A stretch of 63,329 nucleotides of DNA, counting the filler, from Perkinsus chesapeaki ATCC PRA-425 (taxonomy: Eukaryota > Protista > Perkinsozoa): NCBI GenBank assembly GCA_013115145.1. It is 8 parts of 8 records of this genome, joined end to end, with 100 filler letters (N's around TTAATTAATTAA, not from the genome) between each part and the next. Parts side by side here need not be neighbours in the genome. Positions count along the whole stretch, not along the records: positions 60,495 to 61,870 come from JAAPAO010002003.1; 7 more parts are not named here. One strand, given 5' to 3'. The translations under genes were made by a program, and so were the position numbers. The notes below the pieces were generated by a model. It was not told the DNA's origin and searched no databases. It saw only the letters and a program-made list of their open reading frames with translations. Shown one piece after another: positions 1 to 61,870 of the stretch; within the stretch, counting starts at the first letter, position 1; every line of letters starts with the position of its first letter.

Positions 1-355
1 GGATATTCCTGTCGTGAAGGGTAAGACTATGGCTGCTGATGACTTCTTCGAGGGTCAGGGCCGTACTGATGGTGCTCTCACTCCCTGGTATAATGAGCAG
101 GATAAGATCGACTTCATCCATCGTCTTCATGATGCTGGTGTTCGCAACATCGAGATGGAGAGTGTTGCTCTTATGGGTTTCTGCCAGCGTGCCAAGATCC
201 CCGCAGCTTGCGTATGTGTGACCTTGGTGAACAGGTTAGAAGGCGATCAGATTACCTCAACTAAGAGGCAGCTCGCCAAATACAACGAGTACTCAATTCG
301 TGTTGTCAGCAATTACATTGCTACCACTGAGGCTAAGACTGCCGCCACTCATTAA
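1..355 (+). CDS. Uridine phosphorylase, 3' part of upstream tandem copy (runs off window start)
   Basis: Nearly identical to 1602-1956 (4 substitutions seen); DDFFEGQGRTDGA and NIEMES motifs. Confidence 0.9.
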   Translation, partial: DIPVVKGKTMAADDFFEGQGRTDGALTPWYNEQDKIDFIHRLHDAGVRNIEMESVALMGFCQRAKIPAACVCVTLVNRLEGDQITSTKRQLAKYNEYSIRVVSNYIATTEAKTAATH

Positions 356-60494: not shown

Positions 60495-60644
60495 ATGTAG
60501 CCGTTGCTTCCTAACCTTAATGCTCCTCGCCTCTTAGAGGCTTTACCGAGAAGGAAGCGCGTCTTGACAACACTTTTGTTCTTCATAACGGCATGTTAGT
60601 CGTCAAGAAAAACGTGTAAAACAGCGTTTCTGCTATAATTCACG

Positions 60645-60666
60645 TTAGCTCAGAGCAAATTGCTCT
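60645..60666. mobile_element. Hairpin-type excision footprint, inferred TSD TTTGCTCT
   Basis: TTAGCTC (1 mismatch) + AGAGCAAA + TTGCTCT. Confidence 0.68.
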
Positions 60667-60877
60667 ACGACCAAATACATACTCAACTTTTCTCATTTTT
60701 CTCTGCCAACAACATACATACTGGGCTAGCTGTGCTACCAACTCATCCACTACCGACTCGGACAGTACTATCAATTAGTCTACTTTTACTCCCGCTCATA
60801 TTCCTCGCGCGCATTTCGCGCTATAATGTAACTTGTATAATGCTCGATGTAACTCGCTTGGACAGCGCTATTATATA

Positions 60878-60995
60878 CGAAAACAGCAGAGGATTAAAGA
60901 ACACTTGGAAATTCCAAGTGCTCTTTAATCCTCTGCCGTTTCCGAGTTCGCCGCGATTATGTATTCCAAGTTGGAATACATAATCGCGGCGAACT
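60878..60995. mobile_element. Twin long palindromes forming a double-hairpin excision footprint, inferred TSD CTTGGAAT
   Basis: Arms 60886-60910 and 60912-60936 (24/25, extending to 30/33); arms 60945-60969 and 60971-60995 (25/25). Confidence 0.92.
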
Positions 60996-61099
60996 TTGGG
61001 TAAAATAGCAGTCGTGGTTACATAAGAGCACATGCATTTTTTGATAAGAGCGTAGCTGCTCTTTTGACAGCACGGTATATTTTATTAGCCTATCTGCCG

Positions 61100-61137
61100 T
61101 ATCTAGGCTAGATAATCTAGATCAGCTAGACTAGCTG
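61100..61137. mobile_element. Two nested excision footprints, inferred TSDs TATCTAGC and TCTAGCTG
   Basis: TATCTAG + GCTAGATA + ATCTAG + AT + CAGCTAGA + CTAGCTG. Confidence 0.72.
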
Positions 61138-61446
61138 GAGCAGTATAGGCCCATCTACATCGCTGAAATGGTAGTTCGTGTCCGTGCTACGGACGCGGAA
61201 CTCCGTGGTTTCCACTGGACGCCGTCCAGGAAAGGGAGAGGGGCAGAGGGCTGCTACAACGTCGTCGGCAGTGGAGTCGTAACTAACCTGGGACGTGCCT
61301 GACCGGTTGGTCGCCCCACTCGATGAAGAGCTGCCCACAGTCTGTGGGCCACAGAGGAGTTTACCGATGAGGAACTAGATAAGCTGTTCGAGCTATATAA
61401 AATTGGAGAAAATTGGTCAACCAATGCCGACGTAGCACACTATCAG
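61131..61446 (+). pseudogene. Disrupted exon of an unknown gene
   Basis: Removing a TAAC duplication (~61280) and the 14-bp footprint gives one frame LEQYRPIYIAEM...DEELPTEEFTDEELDKLFELY...HYQ ending at a GT. Confidence 0.62.
61334..61355. mobile_element. Perfect 22-bp excision footprint, inferred TSD CCCACAGA
   Basis: CCCACAG + TCTGTGGG + CCACAGA. Confidence 0.9.
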
Positions 61447-61466
61447 GTACCGCATCCACTGGCATC

Positions 61467-61503
61467 ATTGTGCGCTGAGCCTCAGCGCACAATCACGCTG
61501 AGG
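61467..61503. mobile_element. One-sided excision footprint, TSD CGCTGAGG
   Basis: ATTGTGCGCTGAG-C-CTCAGCGCACAAT, then CA, then an intact CGCTGAGG. Confidence 0.82.
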
Positions 61504-61870
61504 CAATGCGCTAAGCCTCAGCCGCCTAGGTGAAATTGTGTGCTCGGGCATTAGTCTTCGGGTGCGGTGCGTATCCTGCAATGCCGGGCCGGCATACATA
61601 TCACCGAGCGAAAGGGTCTCTATGAAGTGGTACTGGTCCTCAGCAGCAATAAAAAGGATTCATTGTTTAATAATGGAAAGAGACTCACCAGCCCTCTGAA
61701 GCGACATAATTCATCTCCTATTAGATAGTTGTGTCTCCAGGCAATATATGATGTATAATGTATAATGTAGTGAAAACCGACATTCTAATAACCGAATTTA
61801 TTATAACTAGTATGCTTGACACGTGAGAGGTTCGATGGGTAACCCAACACCCACGGCAAAACCGTTTTGT

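Follow-up and report, generated by a model that had tools for sequence, protein, structure and literature searches.

In plants, budding yeast and Candida, the footprints of Ac/Ds elements contain P-nucleotide insertions whose central base is complementary to the one that adjoined the transposon end, and hairpins formed by the flanking DNA have been given as their cause (PMC5873905). The longest arms reported for these footprints measure 20 nt in yeast and 3 nt in Candida (PMC5873905), and Ac/Ds-type opened ends are rejoined by end joining, often via microhomology (PMC5873905, PMC1978519). Hermes generates 8-bp duplications with the pattern nTnnnnAn (PMC10368747). In Arabidopsis, a 598-bp inverted repeat that formed beside Ds has been attributed to the formation and opening of hairpins in hAT excision (PMC1978519), and the MULE Muta1 goes through a flank hairpin of 43+43 nt with no offset, makes 8-10-bp duplications and excises for the most part precisely (PMC5499845). 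Because excision scars in natural genomes are usually too short to be recognised, their repair chemistry has been studied almost only with reporter constructs.

Here, we describe a natural locus of Perkinsus chesapeaki ATCC PRA-425 at which palindromic arms of 33 and 25 nt surpass the longest reported experimental ones and for which a paralog shows the ancestral empty site. The window, i.e. the whole stretch of DNA of 63,329 nt, holds the locus in the piece 60495-61870 (JAAPAO010002003.1; 1376 nt, 0 N), which was the object of the analysis. The twin palindromes found there are real, and we consider it likely that they are best read as the repair scar of an excised hAT-type cut-and-paste transposon.

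The twin palindromes and their target

The original prediction described two adjoining palindromes, each centred on a single base and paired over 24/25 to 30/33 and over 25/25 positions, and recomputing the pairing gave the same result. In palindrome 1 the first 9 nt pair perfectly, the first 25 positions give 24 pairs and the full arms, of 33 nt, give 30; palindrome 2 is paired throughout (25/25). The two meet at 60944/60945 without microhomology (0 shared bases). When the 1376-nt piece was shuffled 2000 times, no perfect arm exceeded 12 nt, and 5-6 nt was typical. Folded as single-stranded DNA, the segment 60870-61003 has a free energy of -55.5 kcal/mol (z = -16). The coordinates of arms and centres are listed in Table 1, together with the further footprints of the piece.

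The mismatches of palindrome 1 are all of one kind, as had been noted (T>C): in 3/3 cases the inner arm has C (60942, 60937, 60922) instead of T opposite an A of the outer arm (60880, 60885, 60900). The change may have been from G to A in the outer arm or from T to C in the inner one. A RIP-like origin and polymerase error were both considered, and neither fits the sequence contexts. Palindrome 2 has no mismatches.

Both palindromes had been said to rebuild one 8-bp target, and CTTGGAAT was indeed obtained from each side, once as the end of the left arm plus the complement of the centre of palindrome 1, and again as the complement of the centre of palindrome 2 plus the start of the right arm. 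Since the target is present in both flanks, it was duplicated. With the target bases numbered C1 T2 T3 G4 G5 A6 A7 T8, the first half of the top strand consists of the left flank forward to 7, the complement of 8 and the complement of 7 back to -25, and the second half of the complement of 26 back to 2, the complement of 1 and the sequence forward from 2 through the right flank. The centres, A60911 and G60970, are complementary to those target bases that an inserted element would touch. By our own arithmetic, a 6-nt overlap together with two complementary centres would occur by chance with a probability of ~1.5e-5.

This geometry has two features expected of hAT elements, namely an 8-bp duplication that can be reconstructed from both flanks (for CTTGGAAT, with the same 8-bp geometry in the other eight footprints of the piece) and odd palindromes centred on the complement of the element-adjoining base, corresponding to a nick 1 nt into the flank. 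CTTGGAAT also fits the Hermes-type pattern nTnnnnAn. The other eight inferred targets for the most part do not, a point against the hAT reading; this preference varies among hAT families. Snap-back synthesis, in which the strand would prime on its own fold-back, was rejected as an origin of the palindromes, as a one-base centre leaves no loop.

Authenticity of the DNA and the paralogous contig

Logan contigs from four DNA runs (X1; X2-X4), which represent two samples and two studies, extend over 60538-61870 and show 0 differences from it. Zero differences across the contigs of two studies make a fold-back chimera of one library unlikely. More generally, an assembly or library fold-back artefact is extremely improbable: perfect palindromes are typical of chimeric fold-back reads, and both samples are flagged as possible sources of the analysed DNA and may be the same strain, but the contigs were built independently from the four runs and carry the locus at full depth, and chimeras do not yield small internal 22-nt motifs of the same geometry. 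No further run contained the locus at even 5% of sampled words in the run index, and an exact-pattern scan with the left arm gave no match in metagenome or prokaryotic genome collections.

One further related contig was found in both samples, with a length of 6063 nt in X1 and 5024 nt in X2-X4. This paralogous contig shows 11/64 differences from the locus over 60841-60904 and then 14/113 over 60971-61083, and it passes over exactly the 66 bases in between (60905-60970), with no letters separating the two blocks. The predicted addition of 66 bp thus corresponds exactly to the number of bases missing from the paralog. Deleting 60905-60970 in silico yields ...AAAGAACAC/TTGGAATACATAATC... (the slash marks the joint). 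The empty site that had been foreseen, ...AAAGAACA-CTTGGAAT-ACATAATC..., is therefore matched by a homologous site with a single target copy as expected for hAT excision, although the comparison is with a paralog and not with an allele, and the joint bases of the paralog probably differ within TTGGAA, since the aligner found 3 rather than 6 ambiguous letters at the joint.

As the paralog skips these 66 bases, the outer arms are the old flank and the inner arms are additions built from the local flanks. Furthermore, the paralog is ~15% diverged from the locus (12-17% by block), whereas the arms differ from each other by 0-9% (5% overall for palindromes 1 and 2), and the palindromic additions are therefore younger than the duplication. 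Judging by these alignments, the site appears to have once carried a single copy of the target, with the inner arms arising after the two copies diverged. It is very unlikely that the paralog instead represents the derived state, in which old palindromes lost 66 nt by slippage between the TTGGAA repeats. Six-base direct repeats do flank the 66 nt and palindromes are known as deletion-prone, but arms 0-9% apart are at odds with loci that are 12-17% apart around them, the 14-nt motif described next would need the same loss, and the origin of the palindromes would be left unexplained.

A second footprint, at 60645-60666, could be compared in the same way. The 30-nt loose end of the paralog and an exact match to 60660-60679 align to the locus with one gap only, which measures exactly 14 nt and lies at 60646-60659, and this footprint is thus also missing from the paralog. 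Between the homologous blocks, the segment 60680-60840 comprises 161 letters at the locus vs 377 in the paralogous contig, i.e. a large indel or a replaced segment. In X1, the locus contig (60538-61870) has a relative depth of 339, its paralog one of 107 and other neighbours 74-86; in X2-X4, locus contig and paralog are about equal (129 vs 124, 154 vs 129 and 39 vs 48). This contrast between samples may reflect a difference in copy number, or short unitigs may have distorted the depth.

The paralog also bears on the idea that what was inserted is a MITE-like mobile element, of double-hairpin or foldback type, or a gene for a hairpin RNA, as the two adjacent stable hairpins might suggest; we regard this as scarcely credible. 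A foldback or MITE-like element would bring sequence unrelated to its flanks and occur in several copies. The inner arms, however, are reverse complements of the local flanks, which the paralog has as well; no other copy at >=80% was found in the runs, and the only related contig lacks the inner arms. An RNA gene could draw on matches to microRNA precursors in Rfam, but these were only generic matches to the hairpins at 20-31 bits, far under gathering scores of 66-87 (best match 31.4 bits vs a threshold of 86). No contig from the two RNA runs of the species lies on the stretch, which is no proof of absence.

The piece 60495-61870 is non-coding DNA. A tRNA scan of the piece found none, and there is no ORF of more than 107 codons, with no Pfam match for the ten longest. 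The G+C content rises from 41-44% to 52-60% across 61100-61700, where no ORF or protein-family match accounts for the rise. At the start of the piece, 60495-60571 is part of a multi-copy repeat, with a summed contig depth of 970-1620 vs 75-340 for its neighbours, and several further contigs agree with it over 60495-60567 and part from it at 60567 or 60571. The repeat may be a transposable-element end beside the footprint-rich stretch; its terminal bases fit neither an LTR-like nor a hAT-like end.

Further probable footprints of the same geometry

The 1.4 kb around the twin palindromes are rich in smaller structures of the same kind. One-base-centred palindromes with arms of at least 6 nt number 13 against 0.36 expected from dinucleotide shuffles, none of which reach this value (0/2000; maximum 5), and the majority have an arm length of exactly 7 nt. 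Even palindromes with arms of at least 5 nt are absent, and there is only one with arms of at least 4 nt vs 6.1 expected, a depletion seen in that 1996/2000 shuffles have as many or more.

Six of the structures share a 22-nt form with the order 1..7, 8', 7'..2', 1', 2..8, i.e. an 8-bp target into which its complete reverse complement has been inserted, for a gain of 14 nt, vs 0.007 expected per shuffled sequence. Even when the existence of the palindromes is taken as given, four motifs have no more than one mismatch, vs ~0.03 expected by our own arithmetic; the motifs with two mismatches are individually weaker. Two more footprints of the piece obey the same rule but depart from this form, one being a classical 8-bp duplication and the other a gain of 23 nt (Table 1).

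Table 1. Elements of the twin palindromes and further footprints in the piece 60495-61870 (mismatches of 22-nt footprints are per 14 constraints)
Feature	Position	Strand	Description
Outer left arm	60878-60910	+	Ancestral left flank; ends with target bases 1-7, CTTGGAA (60904-60910); paralogous contig aligns over 60841-60904
Palindrome 1 centre A	60911	+	Complement of target base 8 (T); the T is directly visible at 60977 in the right-hand copy
Inner arm 1	60912-60944	+	33-nt P tract, the former bottom strand of the left flank; reverse complement of 60878-60910; absent from paralog
Inner arm 2	60945-60969	+	25-nt P tract, reverse complement of the right flank; absent from paralog
Palindrome 2 centre G	60970	+	Complement of target base 1 (C); the C is directly visible at 60904 in the left-hand copy
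Outer right arm	60971-60995	+	Ancestral right flank; begins with target bases 2-8, TTGGAAT; paralog aligns over 60971-61083
22-nt footprint	60645-60666	+	TTAGCTC-A-GAGCAA-A-TTGCTCT; target TTTGCTCT, reverse complement inserted, +14 nt; 1 mismatch; absent from paralog
22-nt footprint	61100-61121	+	TATCTAG-G-CTAGAT-A-ATCTAGA; 1 mismatch (one centre off)
22-nt footprint	61116-61137	+	TCTAGAT-C-AGCTAG-A-CTAGCTG; 1 mismatch; overlaps right-hand target copy of the footprint at 61100-61121
22-nt footprint, weaker	61208-61229	+	GTTTCCA-C-TGGACG-C-CGTCCAG; 2 mismatches, both in left copy
Classical footprint	61236-61251	+	GAGAGGG-G-C-AGAGGGC; 8-bp target duplicated, both inner bases changed to their complements; 0 mismatches, 0.027 expected per shuffle
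22-nt footprint, perfect	61334-61355	+	CCCACAG-T-CTGTGG-G-CCACAGA; 0 mismatches
23-nt-gain footprint	61473-61503	+	CGCTGAG, centre C, 13-nt P tract, filler CA, intact target copy CGCTGAGG
22-nt footprint, weaker	61574-61595	+	TCCTGCA-A-TGCCGG-G-CCGGCAT; 2 mismatches

The unit of these motifs is well defined. When the motif was generalised over target sizes n = 4-15 and compared with shuffles, n = 8 gave 1/4/6 matches at <=0/1/2 mismatches with 0.000 expected, and clear enrichment was restricted to this size: at <=2 mismatches, n = 6 was weak (4 matches, 0.92 expected), as was n = 7 (2 matches, 0.10 expected), n = 5 was not enriched and n = 9-15 gave zero. Duplications are of 5 bp for Transib/RAG and usually of 9 bp (8-10) for MULEs. 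A MULE/Mutator footprint was rejected, as there are no even palindromes with arms of at least 5 nt and no motifs with n = 9-11, and so was a Transib/RAG-type footprint (5-bp duplication, even P-nucleotide palindromes), as n = 5 is not enriched and even palindromes are missing.

Together, the nine footprints (the twin palindromes and eight more) occupy 181/1376 bases, or 13% of the piece, and the rule that the centre is the complement of the adjoining target base holds at 15/18 of their centres. Eight of the nine require that the hairpin be opened ~7 nt or more from the tip, in agreement with the suggestion that hairpin processing is unusual in this organism. At 61100-61137, which is rich in CTAG, two 22-nt footprints overlap: the left target copy of the second (61116-61122) falls in that on the right of the first (61115-61121), which looks like two hits on the same few bases. 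The very end of the piece holds the odd palindrome CAAAAC-C-GTTTTG (61856-61870), which could be a tenth footprint cut by the contig edge.

Could such structures arise with no transposon, by short-range template switching in replication or repair, with a polymerase that moves to the opposite strand and returns, copying what lies nearby in inverted order? Both template-switch mutations and inverted triplications have been described (PMC7954356; an Aspergillus flavus preprint), the 22-nt motifs are formally miniature inverted triplications, and the piece has an excess of local micro-duplications, with 23 short direct repeats (>=6 nt within 40 nt; 60495-61870) vs 9.3 expected and a shuffle maximum of 19. 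We nevertheless consider this explanation unlikely. It does not account for the fixed 8-bp unit, with clear enrichment at n = 8, weak at n = 6-7 and none at n = 9-15, and priming by fold-back would need a loop, for which a one-base centre has no room. In the twin structure, two separate inverted copies follow each other in exchanged order (from 8 back to -25 and from 26 back to 1); two opened hairpins account for this directly and one switch-and-return does not. The classical footprint at 61236-61251 contains no inverted sequence.

Examples of the short direct repeats are AAAATTGG-AG-AAAATTGG at 61399, TTTTCTC-AT-TTTTCTC at 60688 and a 7-nt tandem at 61751. The short direct repeats of the piece do not obey the hairpin rule.

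Proposed excision mechanism and comparison with known systems

Given the observed geometry and recurrence of the scars, their restriction to 8 bp and the empty ancestral site, we find that the best-supported reading is the repeated insertion and excision of an element that makes 8-bp duplications and leaves flank hairpins with a 1-nt offset, and we hold this to be quite probable. The excision through hAT hairpins that had been proposed for the twin palindromes gains support from a geometry that matches the centre rule of Ac/Ds (PMC5873905), together with the empty site.

At the twin palindromes, a cut-and-paste transposon with an 8-bp duplication would have inserted at CTTGGAAT and later excised. 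As in the hAT mechanism, excision would proceed via covalently closed flank hairpins with a nick 1 nt into the flank, and the tip base of the hairpin on each flank would be the complement of the base lost to the element. The hairpins would then be cut far from the tip, 33 nt away on the left and 25 nt on the right. On both sides the centre reads as the complement on the top strand, which suggests that each hairpin was incised on the strand that runs 5' to 3' away from the tip. Such a cut would turn the former opposite strand into a long 3' tail, and the two tails would be joined tip to tip, with no trimming and no microhomology, and then filled in, giving +66 bp.

A commoner outcome in the piece may be that the tails anneal and the remainder is trimmed: if both hairpins were opened at least 8 nt from the tip as 3' tails, these would be complementary over the eight target positions, and annealing through these 8 bases would lead to the 22-nt motif (+14 nt). 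Opening beside the tip would lead to the classical footprint. As for the enzyme, we suggest an MRX-Sae2-type incision beside a Ku-bound end. In vitro, MRX-Sae2 cuts the 5' strand beside a Ku-bound end at a distance of ~30-35 nt (PMC5795780), which the putative opening distances of 33 and 25 nt resemble.

Two further points, besides the target preference, count against the hAT reading. Nine cycles of insertion and excision in 1.4 kb are a very high density, and repair does not usually join two long 3' tails at their tips when they share no microhomology. The density might come from an element close by that hops locally, or such scars might be abundant throughout the genome. It is conceivable, if rather doubtful, that the non-coding DNA of this organism is carpeted with recognisable hAT footprints, and that cycles of insertion and excision, together with hairpin opening far from the tip, are a major source of new sequence and hairpins. 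If true, past excisions could be counted throughout the genome by means of the 22-nt inverted-target signature, which would also record the distance at which the host opens hairpins; for this we suggest an MRX-Sae2/Ku-type incision 8-35 nt from the tip.

The finding of smaller scars under one 8-bp rule provides a simple signature by which historical excision could be measured across a genome. Excision repair can also make long perfect palindromes and stable hairpins de novo, from which fragile sites, foldback elements or hairpin RNAs can develop.

Other systems share parts of this picture. Template-switch mutations and inverted triplications likewise re-copy local sequence in inverted order and thereby make new hairpins, but they predict no fixed unit, whereas here the unit is 8 bp and the centres obey the rule of the transposase nick. 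The MULE Muta1 and Transib/RAG also excise through flank hairpins (PMC5499845); the offset-free hairpin of Muta1 would, however, give even palindromes, and those described here are all odd, with clear enrichment only at 8 bp. The inverted repeat beside Ds in Arabidopsis is, like the twin palindromes, a long inverted repeat derived from host DNA, but it adjoins a resident element and has been explained by an aberrant distant cut, while here both flanks are involved, the arms are moderate and no element is left.

The closest resemblance is to Ac/Ds, Tam3 and Hermes, with which the locus shares the retained 8-bp duplication, the complement-centred palindromes and the chemistry of flank hairpins offset by 1 nt. 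Unlike in Ac/Ds footprints, where the reported maximum is 20 nt (yeast), arms of 33 and 25 nt occur here on both sides at once. The untrimmed tip-to-tip join also sets the locus apart from the footprints of Ac/Ds, Tam3 and Hermes, as do the gain of 14 nt with an inverted target as the main product and the occurrence of nine footprints in 1.4 kb. Long palindromic hAT footprints are already known from experiments, and the scar described here is of a known kind, with record arm lengths and an unusual density. What is distinctive is the combination of two-sided arms of 33/25 nt, a natural paralog with the empty site, a dominant 14-nt product and nine footprints in 1.4 kb.
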